Assembly: GCA_020891255.1 (NCBI GenBank)
Contig: BQFW01000013.1
Coordinates: 2,418,001-2,482,000 of the forward strand
Direction: 5' to 3'
DNA from: Entomortierella parvispora E1425
Lineage: Eukaryota; Fungi; Mortierellomycota
DNA: 64,000 nt
Shown: positions 25,101 through 50,900 of the stretch, piece after piece
Layout: each line of letters opens with the position of its first letter
Position numbering within the stretch: position 1 is the first letter of the stretch
Program-made: the position numbers and the translations under genes
The notes under the pieces: model-generated
Told to the model about the DNA's origin: nothing
Seen by the model: only the letters and a program-made list of their open reading frames with translations
Database searches by the model: none

Positions 25101-27425
25101 CTTTGTGGAGCGTGCAGAGCAAGAGCAAAAGGAGGAGCGACGAAAACGGGCGGCCCAGCAACGGAGACAGGCGAGGCGCCTACGACGCCTCACCTCAGCG
25201 ACGGCGACCGAGATCAGTGGTGACAGTGACAAGGACAGGGAATCGACCCGCGAAAAGATGGGGCGGGCCGGATTGGCGCATCAGATGGATGATATCCGCA
25301 ACCAGATTGACCCTGACCGTCTGGCCTTCCAGCATGTGGAACACCAATTGCAGACCAAACTCATCAAGATTTTGCAGTTGCTGGAACTTTCTGGATCGGA
25401 GCCTCGACTGAAGGAAGAGTTCCCGATGAAGCTGTACAAGCAGATTATCCAATGTTGTCAAAACATCTTGGACAGGATGGTGTCGATGCGCATGGCGGCT
25501 CAGTTGCTCTCGCCCGAGGTTCGCGATTTGGTGACGGGACCCATGAACTACTACCGTCGCGACATGGTAAGTCGGAGTTTTGAGATGACTCTGGACAGAA
25601 AAAAAAAAAGAAAAAAAAGATATGGACTCTTGATGTACTCACTCGGCTTTTCCACACTTTTGTTCATAGGTTGGAGCGTTGCTGCTCTACTTCAGTGTCT
25701 TGTCTTCGTCTTTGGCTTCAAAGTCGCCTCTGCCCCCATATCTGCCATCAGCGCGTATGGCCCGCCTTCGTGTGATCTACAATGTCAGAGAGGCGATCGC
25801 AGCTCACCAGGCTCAAACCGGAGAAGACCATTATACCTATATTTATTACTACGCGTTTTCATCCGCTCTGGAAGAAGTCATTGAAGAGCTGGGTGAGTAT
25901 ACAGAAACCTTTTTTCATGAATAGGAACAATATCGAGACCTGTTGCTAACCCTCTGTTCTGTTTGATTCGTTAGAACTTTTGGCGATTTTGATCAAACCC
26001 ATTGTGGGAGTGACCTTGGTGTCCTCTGGCGATGAGTACTCATATGGGCTCGGACAAGCAAACGAGCCGCTTCATATGCCCCCCAACCTATGTGCAGGAG
26101 CAGGAGTAGGATCCGATACATCTCAGGCTGGAAGTTTGCCTACAGCAACCGCGTCAACTACTCCTGGGGCCGCTCCTCAATCATCGTATTCACAGCATGC
26201 GGGATTGGGCGGCAGTCTAATGGAGGGAAGTCTGAGCTCTGTCCCAGGTCTGGCGGTGGGTATGGTCAATGTCAGCATGGCCAACCCTTCGACAGCTGGC
26301 ACAGGCGCCGGCGCTTTTGGATCAGCTTCCTCTCCAAGACTTGGACTGGGGGCTCTCCATGGAGGACTCAGTGCCACTGGTTCAACGCCTCAGCAGCGAC
26401 AGTACCTGCATGAGCGTCTGCTCCAACAACAACATGCTCAACGGAACCGCCGCGCTTTCTTTGCAGACGAGGCGAACCAGGCCTCAGAAGGAGAAGACCG
26501 TCAGGATAACGACGTTGAAGAGCCAGCCGGTCCTTCAGAGAGGGAGCTTGCTCTTGAGGAACAACTTCGGGAAATGGCAGCTCAAAAGGAGGCATTGGAA
26601 CGTCAGATCGAGGAACAGCACCAAAAGCTCTTACTGTTGGCTGCCAAGGACGGTACTGGGGCCGATTCGTCGACTGCAAAGCCCAAATTGGGTCGTCAAA
26701 AGAGTAAGGTGTTTGGGGAGGGACTCCACCTCCACACTTCTGTGGCGGGACTTCATATCGATATTCCCACAGTCACGTCTCCTGTTAATGCTGGTGCTTC
26801 GTCTTTGGCTGTCCCAGGCGCCAAAGCCATGCATCCTGCAAGAGCAGCTCCGACTTCCCCGATCCTGCTGATGGATGAGAACATGCTGTTGGGAGGCAGT
26901 GGACTTGGAGGCCGCCATTCTCTGCGCTACAAGGAGGCGATTGAGACGGCTCAGGAGGCCAGTGGTCAGCGTTTGGTCGAGGTCCCTACTTCTCCGTTGA
27001 CCAGTGTGACCGTGGTACCGGGTCATATTCAGATGCCAACTGCACAACAACAGGCTACTGGTACCCCGACAGCAGCAGCGACTGCGACCCTTGCGAGATC
27101 GGGTTCAGACAAGAAGGTGGATCACCACCAGCACTCACGCCACCGATCCATCAGTCGAGACCGCGGTCATGGACACGGACATGGACCTGAGCACGAGTCT
27201 TTTGCGCTTTCACCCACGAGCACCGGCTCAGCCCAGTTTTCAAACAGGAAGAGTAGTAGCAGTAGCAACAACAACACCAACGCCATGACGGTACCTGTGG
27301 CGGTGGTGATGCCTTTTGGCACTGACCTTGTGGCCCAGGCACCTTTACCTCTACACCTGATCCCCACGGTTGCTCAGCAGCAGGCCTTACAGCAGCTAGA
27401 GCATCAACAGCAACGACAAAAGTAG
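19129..27425 (+). CDS. Large multi-exon FUSC/aromatic-acid-exporter (ArAE_2, Bre4-like) membrane protein
   Basis: ORF segments 19129-19805, ~19940-20681, ~20820-24557, ~24653-25566, ~25670-25892 and ~25977-27425 are separated by GT-AG introns (boundaries approximate). N-terminal TM bundle ([14 protein letters not shown]...[11 protein letters not shown]). FUSC_2-like [10 protein letters not shown]...[21 protein letters not shown]...RIGGTLAG. C-terminal FPMKLY..I...Q.ILDR. Confidence 0.85.
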
Positions 27426-28228
27426 ACGACTCATACCTATAATCTTTAATACACCATGTGGTTCATCGTGTTCAGTTTTCCTGCTTGCAATGACCCAAGA
27501 TCCCCTCCATCTTCACTCTTTTTTTTTTTATCTCTCGTCACGTAAAAACTCTGGCCAGATTGCGCTATGTACGACCCAAGGGGCCAAGGATGTTGACAGG
27601 AGACAAAAATAACGCTTAACGGGGGGCCTGGCTCTAGAAGAGGTCGCCCCAGGGACGAAACAGATTTTTTGATGTCTTGTTCACGCGAGTGAGCTGGGTT
27701 TTCTGTGTTGCAACCTGGTAGTCCTTCCCCAACGAAGCAACTCTCCTTGCATCTTTTGGGTTCGTTTTTACTTTTTAGTCCCCAACAGAGAGTCTGTTAG
27801 ATTTTCTGATCTTGTTGGGATACCTGGAAGTCCTCAAGAACGGTCCCCCCTTTTTTTTTCTCCCCTTGATGATTTTTCGGGGCAGCACTTTTTTTTTCTG
27901 GGAGTCTGGTTTTTTGGTCGATGCATTCGTCTCTGGGAGTAAATAACGACGCACCGTCTACTGCTTTTCTTCTGGTGCATTGCATCTCTCTCGATCTATA
28001 TCTTTTTTCCATCCTGGGGCCCTTCTTTTTAGATCGGATCTCCCTAGATTTATTCTCCCTGCTTTTTTGTCTGATCTGTACACGGCAGGGAACGACTTTG
28101 AAGAACATATAAAAAGGACAGCCTTTGTTTCCAATGATTTCTATATCCCATTCATCTACCACTAGTCTTCCACTGCCACACACACACTCACACGCTCTAA
28201 GTCCCAATCCCAAGAGATCAAGCACATC

Positions 28229-28642
28229 ATGTCCGTTTACAAGGGTCGATTCTTCCAAGCCTACATTGTTCTAATTGCCGTCGTTGTGATCCTGAACCAT
28301 GGCGAGAACAGAGGGATGAACTTTGCAGTCAACGCCGCTCCAGTTCCTTATGGGTTAGAGGATTTGACAAGGCCGGCCGTAGAGGGTGTTGTTAATCCCC
28401 TTGGCACCGGTGTGGGTAGAGGGGTTGCAGGAGCAGCAGCAGGTACCCAACAAACCGCTGATCTTCTGGGAGATGCTATCGACACGCTATTGCACACGCT
28501 TGGAGGTATTGCCGGCAACGCAGATCAAGGTGCCGGTGTTGCAGTGGCGAATGCTGCACCTGCTGTGCAGAGTACTGTTCATGCAATCCAACACAATGAT
28601 GGGGCGCTTGGAGACGTTGCGACCATAGTCGGTGGAAACTAA
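28229..28642 (+). CDS. Small Gly/Ala-rich secreted protein (137 aa)
   Basis: Hydrophobic N-terminus (FFQAYIVLIAVVVIL), NAAP processing-like site, intronless ORF, paralogous 5' end at 53420. Confidence 0.7.
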   Translation: MSVYKGRFFQAYIVLIAVVVILNHGENRGMNFAVNAAPVPYGLEDLTRPAVEGVVNPLGTGVGRGVAGAAAGTQQTADLLGDAIDTLLHTLGGIAGNADQGAGVAVANAAPAVQSTVHAIQHNDGALGDVATIVGGN

Positions 28643-29224
28643 AGGAACGAGAACGGCGTGCACAAAGAACTTGTCTTTGTATTCTTTTTTTCCCTCACAG
28701 AGGACTTCTGAAATGAAGGGCTAGCTTGAGTCTTTGTCAATAATAGAATTATTTTGCAACTTTGATCCTGACTCCCTGAGTGTGTTTTTGATCAGCTTAC
28801 ACGACTAGCAGTGTAATACAACTTTTTTTTCATTCCTGAGGAGAAGGTTGTGGAGTCTGTCGACGTTGAAAGTAGCAAGGAATTGAAGGACAGTGAGAAA
28901 AGACAGAGAAGAGGGCTCAGATGAAAGAACCTTTGACTAGTGATAAAACACGAGCCAATGTAGTAGCAGAAGCAAGGATGGTTTGTAGATGTCGCGAACT
29001 TGGCATGGTTGCTCCACGGTCTTTTTTGTTTTTTGCGGTCGCGTCGCGTTCAGCATAGACCTGTTGTTCGTCCATGGAGCCAAGTCTGGAGGTAGTGGAC
29101 ATGGAACTTTTGACGCGACTTGGCCCCCACAGGAGGTCGTCCCTGGCACAAAGGTCTTTCTGGTGGCTGGTAACGCTTTGGTAAGTGGTTTCTGATCTGA
29201 GCACACTACCTTCCCCATATGGGC

Positions 29225-29815
29225 TAACGTCCTCACCGATGCGGCTGATGGATGAGAAAATGCTGTTGGGAGGCACTAGACTTGGAGTCCGTCATTCTCT
29301 ACGCTACAAGGAGGCGATTGAGACGGCTCAGGAGGCCAGTGGTCAGCGTTTGGTCGAGGTCCCTACTTCTCCGTTGACCAGTGTGACCGTGGTACCGGGT
29401 CATATTCAGATGCCAACTGCACAACAACAGGCTACTGGTACCCCGACAGCAGCAGCGACTGCGACCCTTGCGAGATCAGGTTCAGGCAAGAGGATGGATC
29501 ACCACCAGCGCTCACGCCACCGATCCATCAGTCGAGGCCGGACACGGACATGGACCTGAGCACGAGTCTTTTGCACTTTCACCCACGAGTACCAGCTCAG
29601 CCCAGTTTTCAAACAGGAAGAGTAGTAACAGTAGCAACAGCAACAGCAACACCAACGCCATGACGGTGCCTGTGGCGGTGGTAATGCCTTTTTGGCACTG
29701 ACCTTGTGCCCCAGGCACCCTTGCCTCTACACCTGATCCCCACGGCTGCTCAGCAGCAGGCCTTACAGAAGCCAGAGCAACAACAGCAACAACAACAAGA
29801 GCAAAAAAAGTAGAT
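29225..29815 (+). pseudogene. Partial duplicate of the last exon of the FUSC/ArAE gene (copy B)
   Basis: Matches ~26866-27425 (ctgatggatgagaa...ctacaaggaggcgattgagacggctcaggaggcc...aaaagtag) with indels and frameshifts. Confidence 0.9.
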
Positions 29816-40792: not shown

Positions 40793-43408
40793 TGTTCTGG
40801 TTGAGACCGTGATTTTTTCCAAGTAAAACTCTAAAAGTGACAGAAATTGTGCTTTTGATTGTAATTTCAGGCAATTTGTAAATAGGTACGGAGGGAGAAT
40901 GCAAGGAAGAGACCAGGAAGGGGACAAAGGCAAGGACAGGGGACAAGTACAAGGGAGGAAGCAGAGTTGGAGGATTGAATGAGGTTTAATGAGTTAGAGA
41001 GATTGGGTGTAAATATGTATCAGTGTGGCTATGGTGGTTCTGTGCAATAGGAGTATCGAGAGTGGCGAGACAAGGAGTGCGTTTCATTATATTGCAAGTT
41101 TCTATTTATCACTAGGAGCGGTATTTTAAAATTTCGTCCACCTCATACTCTTCTTCGCCGTCAATTATATAGTAGAGTCCGCGGGGGCAGGAGCTCGAAT
41201 GCCGAGTGGCTCTGGGGACGGCAAGTAGGGTCGAAAGGGATCAACAAGGAAGACGTCATGGATCTTGTAGAATGGCGGCAGCTCGACGCGGAAGGTGACA
41301 GGTGGGTGTTGCTCCAAAAGTGTGAACGGCCCAAGGAACTGAGGTCGAAGCTTAGCGGATGGTCTGACACTGTCGACAGGGATGGTAATATTGGTGGCAC
41401 GCAGCAGGACCTTATCACCAACCTTGTACTTGTGATCCCGTCGTCGTTTGTTCGCCTATTTCTCCTGATGATCCTGGGCACGCTGCAGAGCATCCTGGTC
41501 CAGAGCAAGGGTGGTTGCCTTCTCAATCAAGAGGGTGTCAACAATGGGGACTGAGCTGTTGGGTTTACTGAGGAGCGCCGTGGGAAGGCGAGGGTGCTAG
41601 CCAGAGTTGAGGAAGAATATCGAGTATCCGGTGGATGCATTGTTGGCGTTGATGTAGGCGAATTCTGGTGACGGAAGGACCCGGTCCCTTTAGACTGTTT
41701 GTTATCAATAAACGTCTCAACATAGTCTTCAACGTATTGTTCATAACCTCTGCCTGTCCATCCGTCTGTGGGTTGTAGGCGGTTGACAGTGCAAGTTTGA
41801 CATCCATCCATTAGCTTGTGCAACTCCTGCCAGAACCTAATAGTGAGTCGAGTGTCTCGGTCCGAGATGATGGCTGTTGGGGCGCCATGCAGCATGAAGA
41901 TGTTGTCAAAAAACCAGTGGGCGACGTCGACGGCTATGGCGGAGATAGTACCGGGGACGAAGTGAGCTTGCTTGGTGAGCTTGTCGACAAACACTGTGAT
42001 GGCGTCAAAGCTCCCAACTGTGTGGGCGGAAGAGGGCCGGTGAAGTCCACGGTGACTACCTCCCAACGTTGCGAAGGAAGGGTAGGGGTTGCAAGAGTCC
42101 AGCTTGTCGATCCTGGGAGTCCTTGTTCCTTTGACACTTCTCTCAGCTGGCTACGTACTGCTGGGTATCCTTGGCGATGTGAGGCCAATATACGAAACGG
42201 CGCTGGTTGTCGTAAGTCTTCTGAAAACCAAAGTGTCCAGCAGTGGCAGAGTCGTGAGCGTCGTGCAAGAGAGTGAGGCGGATCGGGGAGTGTCGAGGGA
42301 TGGCCAGGGTGGTTGCTCCACGTCGGGTAAAGTAGAGGAGGTTGTTCTGGAATGAATATCCATTGGCAACCTTCCCATCCAGGCAATCCTTGTAGATGGG
42401 TCCAAGTCGAGGATCGTCGTTGTAGTCCTGGACAAGCTGGTCACGGACGTCCGATGACAGGGAGACACTGAGGTTGTATAGCTCAACGGGGTCAGGGTCG
42501 CGGTAGTCCGGTCGTCGAGAGAGGGCGTCCGGGACGATGTTGTCAACTCCTCGCTTGTACTTAAAGTCAAAGTCGTATTCCTAAAGCAACTCCATCCAGC
42601 GAGCCTGTCGACGAGTGAGTTTGGGCTGTGTGGGAAAGTGGCGGAGGGTGGCGTGGTCGGTGTGGACGCTGAACTTGGTTCCATCGAGGTAGTAGCGCCA
42701 AGAGCGGAGGGCATGTATGACAGCTAACAGCTCCTGCTCATGGGTGGCGTAGTTCCTCTCGCCTGACTGCAACTTCCTGGAAGTGAATGTGATGGGATGA
42801 GCATTCCCGTGTCAGTCAATCTGCAGCAGCACTGCACCGATGGCGAAACCGGATGCATCTGTGTCGACAAAGGTGACAAGGCCGGGGTCAAAGATGCGGA
42901 GGACGGGGGCGGAGCAGATGGCCCGCTTGAGTTGAAGGAATGCAGACTGCGCAAGCCCCAAAAATTGTTGAACGTCTTTTGTGCTCCCAGGGGTGGGGCC
43001 AGGCTTTGTTCGAACTTCAAAGCCCCCAAATGAAAATTCTTTGAATAAAAGTTTCATGTGCGCTCTATCTTGCTCTTTATCTTCTTTGAGAGAGCAGAGG
43101 AATGGAGAAAACCAGGGTGGGACCAAGAGCGGGACATATCCGGGTCTGGGTCCAGTTCGACCACAGAAATAGGTGAGCTCAGCTCATGTTTTGATTCCAT
43201 CCTTGGTGATGGTGTGGCCCAAAAATTCAGTTGCTCAATTTCGCGTACAGACCATTCTTGCGGAGGAGACCCAGGACGCTTCGGAGATGCTGCAGGTGTT
43301 CTCTCTTGATCTTGGAGTAGATCCACAGATCATCGAGATACACGACAACCCATTTGTCGAAGACTGGATCGAGTACTCGCAACATCATATTGGAGGAGCG
43401 TTAGTTAG
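40793..43408 (-). mobile_element. Ty3/Gypsy chromovirus remnant 2, same family as remnant 1, in inverted orientation
   Basis: Minus strand: LTNAP...VVVYLDDLWIYS (RT), DVQQFLGLA, TDASGFAIGAVLLQ, ERNYATHEQELLA, integrase, IIDGEEEYEVDE, then a deletion into LTR sequence shared with 35170-35238 (ctcgatactcctattgca). The LTR appears to end ...accagaaca near 40793. Confidence 0.92.
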
Positions 43409-44260
43409 ATCCAGATGCCAACTGCACAACAACAGCCTAGTAGTACCCCGACAGTGGCGGCAGTTGCCACCCTTGCGAGATCGGGTTCAGGCAAGAAGGT
43501 GGATCACCACCAGCACTCACGTCGCCGATCCATCAGTCGAGACCGCGGTCATGGACACGGACATGGACCTGAGCACGAGTCGTTTGCGCTTTCACCCACC
43601 AGTACCAGTTCAGCCCACTTTTCGACCAGGAATGGTAACAGTAGCACAGCTGCTCAGCAGCAGGCCTTGCAGCAGCTAGAGCAACAACAGCAACAGCATC
43701 AAGACCAAAAAAGTAGACGGCTCATACTTATAATCTTTAATACACCATGGGTTCATCATGTTCAGTTCTCCTGCTTGCCTTGTTCATCATGCTCAGCTTT
43801 CCTGGTTGCCATGACCCAAGCTCCTTCACTCTTTTTTTTTTTTTTTCCTATCTCTTGTCGAGTAAACTCTGGCCATATTACGCTATGTTCGATCCAAGGG
43901 GCCATGAGTGTTGACAAGAGAGAACAATAACTCTTGACGGGGGCCTGGCTCTAGAAGAGGTCGCCCCAGGACTAAACATATTTTTTGATGGCTTGTTCAC
44001 GCTAGTGAGATGGGTTTTCTCTGTTGCAACCTGGTCCTTGCCCTACAAAGCGGCTCTCCTTGGATCTTCTGGGTTCACGTGTAGTCCCCAACGGAGACAG
44101 AACGATGGAGCGGTTGGAACTGTTGCGGACCTGGTTGCATGAAAATAAACAAACAAGAACGGAGCTCACAAAGAACTTGTCTTTGTATCGATGAACGCCT
44201 CTTTTTCCCTCACAGAGGACTTTCTTAAATGGAGGACTGGATTTAATCCTTGTCAATATA
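43409..44260 (+). pseudogene. Partial duplicate of the FUSC/ArAE gene 3' end and downstream flank (copy C)
   Basis: 43409-43715 matches ~27029-27425, 43715-44090 matches 27425-27780, and 44150-44260 matches 28640-28745. The intervening secreted-protein gene is absent from this copy. Confidence 0.9.
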
Positions 44261-44396
44261 CTGTAATAAAATTACTTGGCAACTATGGCTTGAATGCGCT
44301 TTTGATCAGCTCATACACATAGAGTTGTAGACGCTGAAGACATCCGAAGTTACACAGGCGCTGGTAAAGAAGGCATGTGGATAGGAGCAGCTGGTG

Positions 44397-44909
44397 TTAG
44401 CGGCCGTCAAACACGATTTGCACACGCGAACCTCCACAGCCTCCGTTTTCATGTTCCCGTGCACCATCTCCTCTATTGTCCTCAACATGGTCGCTGTACT
44501 CATATTTTCCCCTCTCGTCAACAACGTCGTGTGAGAGACTGCATGTCTTTGTAACGTGTCCATATTGTGTGTCTGACAATCTCCACCCAGAAATAAGAGT
44601 ATTCAGGTTGATGGGGCTGCCGAATACCGCCAATTTTGAGCTTGTTTGGTACACGATAATCGCCTCTTGTCCCTTGTACGTGCCTTTGCAGCACTTGTCA
44701 GCCTTTTGGTATTCGAATTTTTGGAGGACATCTCGGAAAGCAATGATGCCAGCACCCGCACATGGACCATGGTATCCGAAATCGGGACCGTGTCGGTCGC
44801 AGGCATGTTGCACGTTGTTGTTCGGATAGTTCAGCGTTCCATACGTGCATGTGAAGGCTTGAGCAGCCCCCGACACGAACGCAAGCAAGGAGATCGAAGC
44901 GAGGCGCAT
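44397..44909 (-). CDS. Secreted colicin-D-like (tRNase fold) protein, 170 aa precursor
   Basis: Signal peptide MRLASISLLAFVSGAAQA, then QHACDRHGPDFG...AFRDVLQKF...KGTYKG..AIIVY..S.KLAVF...NTLISGWRLS...Y. This is collinear with the colicin D nuclease domain (KHAGDFG...KFRDAIEEH...KGTYR...VYFNP...FLSGWK). TATATAA lies about 65 nt upstream of the ATG. Confidence 0.8.
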   Translation of the reverse strand: MRLASISLLAFVSGAAQAFTCTYGTLNYPNNNVQHACDRHGPDFGYHGPCAGAGIIAFRDVLQKFEYQKADKCCKGTYKGQEAIIVYQTSSKLAVFGSPINLNTLISGWRLSDTQYGHVTKTCSLSHDVVDERGKYEYSDHVEDNRGDGAREHENGGCGGSRVQIVFDGR

Positions 44910-47900
44910 TCTTGTTTTGTTTTGACCTGAGTTGGTGCTTGATCTATGGGGCAAATTGCGCAAACTCGGTGGGTTATATAACTCGGATGGTCAATCTTGG
45001 ATATACAATTGTAAACTTACAAGGTTGCTCGGTTGTTTGTGTGCGTAGTTGAGGGACTTTTGAAGATGCTGAGGTAGGATCGCAGGTGTGTTGGTGAACA
45101 ACGAAGTCCACAGGCTACCTCTATATTTATACGGAAGAGGAAGGGCATCCTGTCGACACAGCGCGCTGCCAGGGAGTGCACAATCTCTAGCGCGCGACAT
45201 CCTGAACTCAAAAAAAAAATGCCCCCTGTTCGCTCTCCTCGGAGCGATTTTGCTCAATTGTTCCGCGTCCAGATCCATTGGCCTTCGTTGAATTGTGCAA
45301 GCCTACGAACCGTGCGCCTCAATGATATCGAGGAGGCCGAAGGGCAAACTTCAGCAACTGTATTTGTGCCAAAGTGTCCAGTACAAACATTGTAACTGGT
45401 CTCTTTCAGGTTCATCACGACCTCGTTTCGACCGCAAGTCTTTCGTGCTGACGGAAACACTACACAAGCATGAGATATGCAGATCAGTGCACAAGCCTCG
45501 CATTTTTAATTTTCCCGCTTTTGCAGAGTCCGCTATCATGCACTATGCACAGGAATCTTCTTGGAACTTCACAAAATGCCGCGGAGTCGGCATTCAAGCA
45601 TCTTGCATAGAAGTTTTTCTCTGTGCTTGATGGTTTTGACTCAGATATTTTCACAGAGAAGTATAGGACAAAACGCAAGAGTCAGGAGAGGACGGTGCCT
45701 GATCGCTCTTTTCAAATGGTTCCTATAGATCTGCCAGCTGTAAACCGAAACGTGGCCTGGAGGACCACGTAGTTTCAGTCTGTTCACAAACGATAGAGTC
45801 GATCTGTTTAAAGTAACTAGGCTTGGTTTTATTGTCCGCGGAGCACATTGCTTCTAGACTTGAAGTAGATTGATCTGACGCGTGCCAGGTTCGGTGGTTA
45901 GGTCCACAACTTCCAAATTCGGCGCTAGATTCCACCTGCCAGTAACTCTCATGCAAAAGGAGAACAAGCAATCCCTCATTGGTCTGAATGATCTGACTGA
46001 AAGCGAAGGGTGATTTCCGATACTCAACCTTTTTTTTAAAAAAAAAATACTTCTGGACCATGGTGACACTCCAAACAAAACAAACAAACAAACAAAGAGG
46101 CGAAAGTTCATGACCCAGACGTTCCGCTGGCATCGATATAGAAACTGTGCGGTGCAGTATTTGGTTTGTGCTACTATTATTGACTTGTCGGATGTTCTCC
46201 CTTTTAGGACCAGCCACGTCGCACAGGCTCTGGCCCAACAGCTCAAGCCAAACATAGAGCATGTGCCTGCCATGTGTCTGGATCTGGGGCCCAGATGCCC
46301 AAACCTCCAGATCCAGCCTTTGCCTAGATCTCGCAAATCGGTATACAAAGGAATGACACTCACCCACCACGGGGCAAAAAAAAAAAAGAGGAGAGCGGAA
46401 AGGTAGGTGGCAATGTGTTGAACATTCAGCACAGGGCCGTGGGGAAAGGAAGTTGAATCAAAAATGGCAGGCACAGCCAGCGCGTCTTTTTTTCTTTTGA
46501 GACATTCACCTACCTCCGCTCAAGACACGACAGGATTCGGATGCACTCCCATGACACATTTGCACCCGACAAGAGATGCCACGATGCATCTCCTACTACA
46601 ACTCAACTCGCATGGCATCGGATGGGGCGAATCTGGACCATTTACTCGGACTAATGTTATGGAGCCGGCCATCACGAGATGCCGGATGCCAGTGAGCGGG
46701 AGGCGCCACCGACGCAATCGATTGGACTGGACCCTGGACTTGAGTTAAAGATCACCTTCATATCGACATCCCTGGTCAGAGATCCACTGAGCGAAGGGAA
46801 ATGAGGTTGGTCACTACGTTCTTAATGCCCATCTCAATCATAGAATCAATTTTGCCATTGAGTACATCTTCGAATGGTTACATCATTAGGATGTCTTCTG
46901 CCACGTCTTCTATCACATTACGACATACTTCACCCTTGGAGGTTGCTCTGCTCTGCCCGTTATTCTTCCTGCTAGCCCAAAGAACCCTGCCAAGCAGTCC
47001 ATTCAAGTGATCAGTGCATAGAGGTAAGTATCATGGATAGCATGTCGGGGGGTTTTATGTCTATACTGGACCGTCGACTTATCAACAGCTTTGCAGGAGA
47101 CAGGAGGCAGGAGGCAGGATGTTGATGGGAGGATCAGTCCTGGAATCAAAAGCATGCTTATGGTCATACGACCTCATGATAGATACAGGAGAGGATTGCG
47201 TTCTGGTTTTCGACTTCAATGAACTGTACGAACTCACTGAAAGCAACTCAGGGCTAAGTTGCCAGTCACCAACAATTTTTTTTTCTTTTTTCCTCGATAT
47301 CTTGCTTCAGAGAGACAATGCTATTCCCTTGCTCGCTTTGCAAACATTTGCATAGGTATTGGATTGACCGGCTGGGAATAGCCAAACTCGAGGGAATGAT
47401 TCACTGATTCTAGAGTCTGTCCTTTGAAGGGTCCGTCACCAACCTCGTACGCTCTTGGAGGATTCACGGATTGCCTCCTCCACATCAAGGACGTTAAGAA
47501 CATTGACGATGGTTAACAGAGTCAAGCAGGAGGTGAACCTGTGGAGGGCGAAAAACAGGAGGCCCAAGATTTTTCTCAACAAGTAGAGCCTCAATATGAA
47601 AGAGGAGGAGACTGAGGAGGATATTTTCATCGAAACATATGACTACCGGAGCGAAGACAAGGACGGTGAGGATGAGATCCAAGTAGAAAATGTTGAAAAT
47701 CCCTATGGAACAGTCCTGCAGCGGATGTCCGCGGATAGAAGGTGATGGCACAGGCTGCTGCCATTGAAGGAGTCCAGGGATTAACAAGGGCCACTGCAAA
47801 GTTGCGGTGCGGTCGGGACCCCAACTCTACCCAAGGACTTGGATTCAGTGGTCAAAAGCTCATGATGATGAAAGCTAATGCCGCATAGAGAATGGACATG

Positions 47901-48249
47901 GATGCAGGTACAAGAAGAAGCGACAGTGGGCCTGGGCCTAAGTGCGGAGGAATCGAAGCCGAAGACCACCCTGTGCATGATCCGAAAAATGCAGTGCGGG
48001 AAGGGAATCGGAACCATATAACAGTAGCAAATAAAGACACGGTCATCGTCCATTGATACAAGTACCACATAGATCGATTGTGTGCAAGGCAGGAGATCCA
48101 CACCGCGATGTCGATAACAGTCTTGTCAGCATGAAAACTATCAAAAAAAAAGGGAAAAAAAAGTGAGCTCAAAATGGGCGAAGCACGTTTACTGATGTTC
48201 TCCCGTTTGTTCCTCTCATCTCAAGTCTCCTTTTCCCAATCCCCTTCCT

Positions 48250-50900
48250 GCATCTCTCCATTGACATCAGAGGGAAATGTGATTGCGTCGTCTTTTTCAA
48301 ACAACATGCCCTCTAACGCACAAAAGGTCCTACCATCCCCATTGTCCTCCCCAATGGCTCTTCTTCACTACTTCCTTCTCCATTGCTCGTGATGCCTACT
48401 CCGACCATCTCGACGCCCTCATTTACCCGGTGTCTAATTACGACCTCATTCTCGACAAACCCTGGCTCACTGCAATCAATCCGCTCGTTAACTGGCGCAA
48501 CATCGACCTGCACTTCGCTCACAATGGGGCCTCTGCACTTTGGCGCTGTCGCGGTTCCAGGGCTAACTCGTCACTTTCCGCTCCCAGGGTAAACTCCTCT
48601 CCGATCTCCACTTTCACTCCCTCGCTGCCCGACAAGGTAGTGCTGTCTTTCTCGCGCTTGTTAAAATGACTCCTTTAACCTCGGACAATAACACCAACAC
48701 CACCCGCCAAGGCCCCCACCCCAGAAACAAAAGAACGTTCAACAATTCATTGATGTTGCTCAGTTCTACCACCAGTACATCGCTAAAGTAGCCACCACCG
48801 CCATCACTCCACTCCTGTCTAGGTGTCTTCGACCCTGACCTCCTCACTACCGTGGAAACTGACGACAACAGCGAGTCGCGCCCTGTTGCCTTCACCTCGC
48901 GCAAACTGAACGGAACTTCCCAACACAGAATAGGAAATGTTAGCTGTCGTCCATACTCTGAAGATGTAGCACTACTACCAGGATGGGTCTCATTTTATCG
49001 TTTACACCGATCACGCCACCCTACAACACTTTCCTACCCAACCAAGTTGACACGCAGACAAGCACGATGGATGGAGCTCCTGCAGGAATATAACTTCATC
49101 TTCAAATATAAGAAAGGATCTGACAACGTCGTCCCTGATGCCCGCTCACGACGACCTGAGCTTCAACCATCTCTGTGTTCAACTCGACCTCGGGCTTCGG
49201 CGGCGCCTGACAGATGGATATAAGCGGTCCCCCATCTCAATCCGATCTACGAAAGCTGCCTCCAGGGAAGTCATCCTTCATATTACTCCCTTGTAGACGA
49301 TATTCTTTGTGTTCTTCGAGATCATGCTCTTCTTGTCTCTATCCCTGCCAATTCTGATATCCGTCTGTCTTTCCACGATGCTCACGACTCTCCATTTCTG
49401 GACATTTCAGCTTCGACAAGACTTACGGACATCTACACTTCCGATTTTATTGGCCGACCATGGCCAAAGGTACACGACGACGTTTCATTCAGAGCTGTGA
49501 ATCATGCCAACGGACAAAGCCAGGCAACCGATCACCTCTATGCCTCCTCCAACCTCTAGCCATCCCTAATAGGCCGTAGCAGACTATTACCATAACTTTG
49601 TCGGCCCTCTCCACAAGACATCGCGAGTCTTCGACTGCATCGCCGTCTTTGTTGATACGCTTACCAATCAAGTCCACTTTGCCGCTTGCCACACCACGGA
49701 CTCTACAGCCCAGATCGCTCGCATTTTCTTCTATCACGTTTTCCGACTCCGCGGCATGCCCGCCACCTTTGTCTCCGACCGAGATGACAAAGAAGTCGCT
49801 CTTGGAAGGAACTCAACTGCTTCATGGATGTCCACCTCACCATGTCCACTGTTTATCACCCTCAAACAGATGAGCAGACTGAGCGAGCCAACCGCACCCT
49901 CATTACGATGCTTCGAAGCCTTGTTGACCAGGCCAGAACAATTGGGATCTACTACTCTCAGCCGCCGAGTTCGCAACCAACAATGCCACCCACGCCTCAA
50001 AAGGAACCACACCCTTCTTCTTGAACTATGGGTCGCACCCAAACGTGCCCATATTACTGTTAATTCCTGCCGCTGGTTCAAAATCCCGCTGTCAATACTT
50101 TTGTCCAGGTTCAAGATGAAGCACTCGTCATCGCCAAGGAAGCACTGGCCACGGCACAGGACATTCAAGCTAAGAACGCCGATTGCCACTAACGGGACCA
50201 TGACCTGGCAATCGGGGATCAAGTCCTTCTCAACCTCGAAAATGTCACTCTCGCGGCAGATCAGAACCGCCCTTCCCGTAAGCTCACTGCCCTCTCTGCC
50301 GGCCCCTTCACTATTACTGAACAACTCTCTCCTGTATCTTTTCTCCTCGACCTACCGCCGTCCATGAAGATCCGTCCTCTCTTCCATGTCGACCGTCTTC
50401 AGCGCTACTACCCGTCACCTGAATCCCCTGACACACGCACCCCGGCCCGCCCACACCCTGAGGTTATCGAGGAAGAACAAGAGTGCGAAGTCGAAGCAAT
50501 CGCTGAACACAGACAATATCGACGCCGACTAGAGTACCCCATCCAATGGAAAGACTACCCTCGGGATGATTGGACATGGGAACTGGAGCAGTCATTAGCC
50601 CATTGCAAGGACATCCTCAACAGCTACAAACGGGACCATGGTCTATAGCCAGGATTTTTTTTAAGAGAGGAAGGTGCAACAGAAGCGCTACAAGGCGTAT
50701 CTACAACCCTAGCGTTTACGACCCTGCCACTCCAAACCCTGCCACACCAACCAGGCCCAACCAACTCAGCCCCACCAATGTGACCACTTTAACATAATCA
50801 TCTTAGCCACATTGACACATATTTGTACCCCAACTCTTTAGCTCGTTAAAACCTCATTAGCAACTCCTACACTTGTCTGACTTCTAGTCTTCACCGCCTT
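48250..50900 (+). mobile_element. Ty3/Gypsy chromovirus remnant 3 (protease end, RT core deleted, RNase H, integrase, chromodomain, PPT, 3' LTR)
   Basis: YDLILDKPWL..INP.VNWR, NVQQFI..AQFY, VETDD, LTRRQARWMELLQEYNF, YHPQTD.QTERANR, EEQECEVEAIAEHR..RRRLEY.IQWKDYP..DWTWE. PPT aagagaggaagg (50663-50674) is followed by TGCAAC at 50675. The LTR shares gccaca.tga.acatattt...aaacctcatt with remnant 2. The 3' end is approximate. Confidence 0.9.

Follow-up and report, generated by a model that had tools for sequence, protein, structure and literature searches.

A signal-peptide-bearing colicin D-family protein of Mortierellaceae as a candidate secreted tRNase toxin of bacterial ancestry

Colicin D of Escherichia coli, whose structure is available as PDB entries 1V74, 1TFO, 1TFK and 5ZNM, cuts tRNA-Arg between positions 38 and 39 (PMC4307339). 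Its activity depends on K607, K608, H611, D614 and S677, and the corresponding family motif has been written as [KH]K, Hxx[ED], [ST] (Zhang et al. 2012, PMC3482391). The toxin is equipped with receptor-binding and translocation domains, is partnered by the immunity protein ImmD, and is cytoplasmic and free of cysteine. Closely related domains, known as Tox-ColD, form the C-terminus of bacterial polymorphic toxins of the RHS, WXG/LXG and pyocin S types and are also found as ColD and ImmD pairs.

[quoted passage not shown] 2012, Biol Direct 7:18, PMC3482391). The ascomycete member is a phyletic-pattern entry with no functional or structural description, for which lateral transfer from bacterial toxin systems was inferred, and the ascomycete ColD accessions are not in the supplement of that study. 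An earlier note on the DNA discussed here, made from the sequence alone, had known of no described example of a secreted toxin of this kind in a fungus. This was too strong, given the ascomycete entry and the two mis-modelled Mortierellaceae orthologues held by NCBI. The literature contained no paper pairing colicin D with Mortierella, nor Colicin_D with secretome, and in the same searches we found no functional study of a fungal ColD protein and no report from Mortierellomycota; a 2026 preprint on BECR classification does not discuss fungal ColD. The stand-alone, signal-peptide-bearing, six-cysteine and immunity-free form seen in the Mortierellomycota clade therefore appears to be undescribed.

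A single-exon gene and its orthologues

The gene lies in a 64,000-nucleotide stretch of the genome of Entomortierella parvispora E1425 (contig BQFW01000013.1, positions 2,418,001 to 2,482,000), referred to below as the window, and positions are those of the window unless a contig is named. A complete single-exon coding sequence for a predicted secreted, colicin-D-like protein occupies 44397..44909 on the minus strand, as the earlier note had it, with the ATG at 44909 and a TAA stop codon at 44397-44399; ORF listing and translation give 170 codons plus TAA and a product of 170 aa. In this product the first 18 aa resemble a signal peptide, the next 108 aa form the domain, and a tail of 44-45 aa follows. 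In the 2.66-Mb contig the gene is found at C13:2462400-2462909, its GC content of 0.48-0.49 is the same as that of its flanks, and a genome scan identified it as the single copy in the 38.9-Mb, 20-contig assembly.

Residues 1-18 (44856..44909, minus strand) have, judged by eye, the classic form of a signal peptide, with Arg2, a hydrophobic core and AQA ahead of the predicted cut, after which the first residue is Phe19; the protein is thus predicted to enter the secretory pathway. The domain that follows (residues 19-126, 44532..44855, minus strand) contains six cysteines, C21, C37, C50, C73, C74 and C123, which probably form three disulfides, since an even number of conserved cysteines behind a signal peptide fits such an arrangement. 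A seventh cysteine, C158, is unpaired and lies in the tail. With a pI of 6.4 the mature protein is close to neutral, and the domain by itself is mildly basic (pI 8.6). A TATATAA motif can be read on the minus strand at 44974..44980, some 70 nt ahead of the ATG; the earlier note had mentioned such a box upstream. It is a possible core promoter and falls within an upstream stretch, 44968-45217, that can still be aligned in assembly X5 (see below). A scan for bacterial-type promoters and terminators stayed at chance level.

An exhaustive homologue search of 1.84 billion representative proteins returned only three close relatives, along with about 27 distant ones at 29-36% identity. The close relatives come from Linnemannia elongata (L001:11557-11979), Mortierella sp. 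AD032 (L009:2569-2946) and a soil-metagenome contig (L007:1612-2037). Each of them is an uninterrupted single ORF with signal peptide, domain and all six cysteines, which are invariant among the fungal ORFs, and a hydrophobic N-terminus of 17 aa in all three is the equivalent of the signal peptide described above. Over the domain, dN/dS is 0.19-0.22 at an unsaturated dS of 0.41-0.55 (Nei-Gojobori, three closer species). The L. elongata, AD032 and metagenome loci are mutually syntenic, and no synteny was detected between the 64-kb window and the 22 kb around the L. elongata gene. A metagenome scan with the fungal alignment gave no confirmed relative, and a second, word-indexed protein search added unnamed metagenome proteins only, with no ascomycete member among them.

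Two assemblies that carry the same species label, X5 and X9, contain the gene at about 85-88% nucleotide identity, with similarity bounded by the stop codon on one side and by a point some 14 nt before the ATG on the other. Every indel within the coding sequence has a length divisible by three, and in both assemblies an in-frame insertion of 3 nt adds one codon to the hydrophobic core of the signal peptide.

In the public databases the two named orthologues are represented by chimeric gene models, JOS17DRAFT_787591 in L. elongata (L001:10001-11982) and KAG0374360.1 in AD032 (L009:761-2946). Both splice exons of an upstream eIF5A-like gene onto the ColD domain, and the signal peptide and the first cysteine are lost. 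The conservation of the intact ORF argues that both models are wrong, and their correction is of value in itself, as they hide the signal peptide.

Bacterial contamination, mis-assembly or a decaying and unexpressed relic of gene transfer could mimic such a gene, and an artefact of this kind would fit the repeat-rich neighbourhood without Pfam-recognisable genes and the chimeric models of both named orthologues. Against it stand the 2.66-Mb contig with matching GC, orthologues in at least five other assemblies or contigs, the intact state of all ORFs with indels in frame and a dN/dS of about 0.2, the eukaryotic type of the signal peptide and the lack of any ImmD match in the genome. An artefact is highly improbable and largely refuted. 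The contamination and pseudogene readings were rejected on contig context, GC, intact orthologues and dN/dS, in agreement with the earlier note, which had spoken against bacterial contamination. Overall, this is a real and conserved nuclear gene of a Mortierellaceae-type fungus, and it is under purifying selection.

The surroundings of the gene deserve a separate description. Genes are sparse and repeats abundant around it, the contig end is about 180-240 kb away, and the nine ORFs of at least 150 aa within about 5 kb (41527-43930 and 45723-50367) have no Pfam match. The 3' flank at 43400-44318, which comes within about 80 nt of the stop codon, recurs in several pieces at 27027-29814, 16 kb away, with 70-89% identity; no second copy of the toxin ORF lies beside that repeat. 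X5 and X9 share a 3' flank directly after the stop codon that differs from the flank found here at 44397, which suggests a rearrangement or an insertion just downstream of the gene in the E1425 genome.

Fold, active site and ancestry of the domain

Sequence and fold both assign the domain to the colicin D family. The Pfam profile Colicin_D (PF11429), which has a gathering cut-off of 25 bits, matches residues 32-116 with 44.3 bits (E 2.3e-11) over profile positions 1-81 of 84, and in a six-frame scan of the genome with the same profile the gene scores 45.6 bits. There is no other Pfam domain in the protein, in which only 18 residues precede the mature domain, and NCBIfam returned zero matches for it. 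A single-sequence search of the PDB sequences gave no match; a profile built from the protein and 30 homologues retrieved the colicin D entries 1v74, 1tfo, 5znm and 1tfk with E values from 1e-22 to 2e-20.

An AlphaFold2 model built on the alignment of the protein with its homologues has block-mean pLDDT values of 95-98 for residues 21-120, where it predicts helices at 30-44 and 53-69, four strands and a C-terminal helix. The best five Foldseek matches of this model are all colicin D, with a target-normalised TM-score of 0.71-0.73 for the isolated-domain entries, and VIA-align places model residues 27-125 on colicin D 599-697 (Z 12.0-12.5, rmsd 2.0 Å over 95 residues) at an identity of 17-18% in the structure alignment. 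The runners-up in VIA-align are CdiA-CT toxins (Z 8.4 and 7.0), followed by toxins of the RelE/BrnT type. The ESM Atlas entries closest in shape fall into bacterial Colicin_D clusters, WXG100-linked, pyocin-S-linked or stand-alone; searches of that atlas by features, or with its own model of the protein (pLDDT 0.32), yielded nothing usable. No sarcin, T1 or U2 entries occur among the Foldseek and VIA-align matches, and Pfam gives none either; the protein is not a member of the fungal ribotoxin/RNase T1 family, even though it may work in a similar mode. The earlier note had named profile and structure comparisons and a phylogeny as checks on its assignment to colicin D, and the first two agree with that assignment.

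The active site is conserved in large part. In the 1v74 sequence the colicin D motifs read KKYKHAGDFG, KFRD, KGTY, VY and LSGWKI, and the fungal protein has all of the corresponding blocks in the same order, as QHACDRHGPDFG (which includes RHGPDFG), AFRD, KGTY, VY and ISGWRL; this comparison bears out the motif series, and the retained His, Asp, Ser and Trp, that had been read from the sequence in the earlier note. His40, encoded at 44790..44792 on the minus strand, pairs with the His of KHAGDFG and corresponds to the catalytic His611 of colicin D, and its alignment column is invariant across 31 homologues. His40, Ser107 (equivalent to S677) and Trp109 are invariant in a 15-sequence domain alignment, and Asp43 (equivalent to D614) is present in all four fungal ORFs.

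The two lysines ahead of the catalytic histidine are the point of departure. The equivalents of K607 and K608 are His35 and Ala36, the latter being the K608 replacement that the earlier note had suspected, and a one-residue insertion precedes His40. Set against the [KH]K element of the family motif, the fungal pair has a His that is permitted at the first position and lacks the second Lys. The replacement of two residues listed as essential in colicin D means that activity or specificity of the fungal protein may differ from that of colicin D. The same His-Ala pair, in the context LQHAF-KH, is also found in a subclass of bacterial ColD toxins that includes RHS-linked members, so the loss of K608 alone is no argument for an inactive enzyme.

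These residues matter for the view that the protein is a domesticated colicin D fold, catalytically altered or inactive, which would be secreted to bind RNA or a ligand, or to act as an effector, and would no longer work as a tRNase. RNase-like pseudo-enzyme effectors of powdery mildews are a precedent. Besides the K607/K608 replacement, the residue ahead of the catalytic His varies within the fungal clade (R, N or S), and the fungal clade is set apart from every bacterial domain by a very long stem (2.78 substitutions per site); both count in favour of altered function. Against this, His40, Asp43, Ser107 and Trp109 are retained in every fungal copy under purifying selection, the His/Ala pair has its counterpart in the bacterial subclass, and a basic residue flanks the catalytic His in all fungal copies, as Arg before it or Lys after it. 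On balance, loss or alteration of catalysis is unlikely, and we favour an RNase that has kept its activity.

The ancestry of the domain points to bacteria. Where sequence or context is informative, the distant relatives are bacterial toxins with N-termini of the RHS type or the WXG/LXG type, or with an ImmD gene next to them; many of the rest are metagenome proteins without assignment. The best non-fungal match is a small ColD toxin of 203 aa at 34% identity (L004; also L005 and L006). In L004, a Logan contig of SRR32193934, the stop codon of the toxin gene (L004:112-723) is overlapped by a gene for a 103-aa ImmD protein of family PF09204 (L004:716-1027). A bacterial origin of the domain is the only sensible reading of this distribution, in line with the horizontal acquisition from a bacterial toxin proposed in the earlier note. 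In a maximum-likelihood tree of 43 domains the four Mortierellaceae sequences are monophyletic (100/100), and there is no supported bacterial sister to them, so that the phylogeny defines the fungal clade and does not identify the donor. Together with the length of its stem this fits a single old transfer followed by heavy remodelling.

Part of that remodelling would be the cysteines. Of the 39 bacterial-type domains compared, 38 have none, and the remaining one has a single Cys. In the homologue alignment 26 of 27 non-fungal domains lack them and one (P0006) has one, and six tabulated non-fungal domains conform to this pattern. On these comparisons the six cysteines, which the earlier note had counted in the domain and which recur in every fungal copy, are an innovation of the fungal clade.

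Export, the acidic tail and possible functions

The family of PF09204 (Colicin_immun, ImmD) has no match at E <= 1 anywhere in the 38.9-Mb fungal genome, in a search for immunity genes that covered this one family; the earlier note had seen no immunity gene in the vicinity, and for ImmD this extends to the whole genome. The question of how a producer would be protected is a real one for a eukaryote, as the catalytic domain of colicin D, when expressed in yeast, cleaves cytosolic tRNAs, according to the citation of Shigematsu 2009 in PMC3775755, and a eukaryote that makes such a domain therefore needs an inhibitor or compartmentalisation.

A built-in inhibitor had been considered in the earlier note, which saw one possible candidate in the acidic C-terminal tail. 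The tail (residues 127-170, 44400..44531, minus strand) has a pI of 4.9 and a net charge of -5, is modelled as disordered with pLDDT values of 44-50 that are mostly below 50, and is lineage-specific. AD032 has no tail at all, L. elongata and the metagenome copy each have one of 16 aa, and that of this gene measures about 44-45 aa; every copy that has a tail has an acidic one. Compared with this gene, X5 has an in-frame deletion of 6 nt in the tail and reads on to the same stop codon, and its differences are spread over all codon positions; in X9, 78 nt are replaced by 93 nt. Between strains the tail is especially prone to in-frame changes of length. Interruption of the tail by an intron was considered; it is made less likely by the similarity to X5, which extends over the tail as far as the shared stop codon and includes an in-frame deletion. 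A conserved auto-inhibitor was rejected as a family feature on the variation in length from 0 to about 45 aa, the disorder and the differences at all codon positions; as an inhibitor common to the family the tail is unlikely, and a weak role in masking charge, or an inhibitory one local to this species, is possible.

The signal peptide, taken together with the missing ImmD, is read as the mark of an RNase that is exported as it is translated, which would spare its producer. The best explanation of the locus, to which we assign a probability of about 0.6, is a secreted tRNase toxin of bacterial ancestry in which export takes the place of an immunity protein. For the fungal protein we infer secretion, disulfides, catalytic activity, substrate and target organism from sequence and model, and the proposal would run as follows. 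A tRNase domain of a bacterial polymorphic toxin or bacteriocin would have passed once, long ago, into the fungal lineage; the bacterial delivery domains and the ImmD partner would then have been lost, the signal peptide and six cysteines gained, and the result held by purifying selection since. Co-translational translocation into the ER would keep the protein off the cytosolic tRNAs of the producer and so stand in for immunity, and the protein would be released as a stable, disulfide-stabilised extracellular RNase. In the cytoplasm of a target it would cut tRNA at the anticodon region via His40 with Asp43, Ser107 and Trp109, and its role may be that of a ribotoxin-like weapon of competition or defence.

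Some properties count against this explanation. Neither Pfam nor the sequence reveals an N-terminal module for receptor binding, translocation or secretion-system targeting in the protein, which leaves it with no recognisable means of cell entry; the mature protein is near neutral and its domain, at pI 8.6, is less basic than the classical ribotoxins; and His35/Ala36 stand in place of K607/K608. The more ambitious form of the proposal, an immunity-free, disulfide-locked secreted anticodon nuclease that would, as a chromosomal 'killer tRNase' of a eukaryote, enter rival microbes or small grazers unaided and kill them, is held only tentatively and is somewhat doubtful.

The absence of a cell-entry module, and the fact that a signal peptide proves entry into the secretory pathway only, have also been weighed in favour of an active RNase that works inside the endomembranes or hyphae of the producer, where it might cleave tRNA in the vacuole under stress, execute cell death upon non-self recognition or control endohyphal bacteria. 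Mortierellaceae commonly host endobacteria, which counts in the same direction, as do transferred toxin domains that have become executors of death or defence in eukaryotes (Zhang 2012, PMC3482391). However, the sequence shows no evident signal for retention or for sorting to the vacuole, the six conserved cysteines suit an extracellular protein, and a lineage-restricted gene in a context unlike that of the L. elongata copy is more typical of conflict genes than of housekeeping genes. An internal function is improbable, somewhat more so than an inactive fold, and the secreted tRNase toxin is retained as the preferred reading.

Comparison with known toxin systems

To our knowledge there is no functionally characterised ColD-family toxin of a eukaryote, and few transferred, secretion-adapted toxin domains of this sort have been taken to the bench. 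A secreted ColD anticodon nuclease, if true, may be the first characterised eukaryotic toxin of its family and would show export replacing an immunity protein; bacterial toxin domains that are re-tooled for secretion in eukaryotes show how new innate weapons originate. The case is small and testable: the domain spans 108 aa, its model is confident and its catalytic His is clear, the tail is present in some natural copies and missing from others, and several of the soil fungi with orthologues can be cultured. An active protein would further provide a tRNase scaffold stabilised by disulfides.

Colicin D itself shares with the fungal protein the Pfam family, the BECR alpha+beta fold, the order of motifs, and the catalytic His together with the Asp, Ser and Trp of KH..DFG and SGW. 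The fungal protein differs in being a bare domain behind a signal peptide, with six cysteines, one extra residue ahead of the His and two more in a beta loop, and His/Ala for K607/K608. The nearest non-fungal relatives, at 27-36% identity, are the bacterial polymorphic toxins with C-terminal Tox-ColD, of which a subclass has the LQHAF-KH variant of the active-site helix that the fungal clade resembles; in contrast to the fungal protein, they carry bacterial delivery modules.

The closest analogy is offered by the fungal ribotoxins and secreted RNases (alpha-sarcin, RNase T1/U2), which are small, secreted and disulfide-stabilised, serve as toxins, have no immunity protein and leave the producer safe by export. 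They belong to another, Barnase-like branch of the BECR fold and act on the sarcin-ricin loop or on non-specific targets, not on the tRNA anticodon loop. The yeast killer tRNases, namely the gamma-subunit of zymocin from Kluyveromyces lactis and PaT Orf2 of Pichia acaciae, are secreted fungal toxins that do cut the anticodon loop of tRNA, but their genes lie on linear plasmids, they depend on carrier subunits to enter cells and they are outside the colicin D family; according to Zhang 2012 (PMC3482391) no bacterial homologues exist for them. If the Mortierellaceae protein is active, it would extend killing via the tRNA anticodon from colicins, CDI toxins and the plasmid-borne toxins of yeasts to a chromosomal gene of early-diverging fungi.
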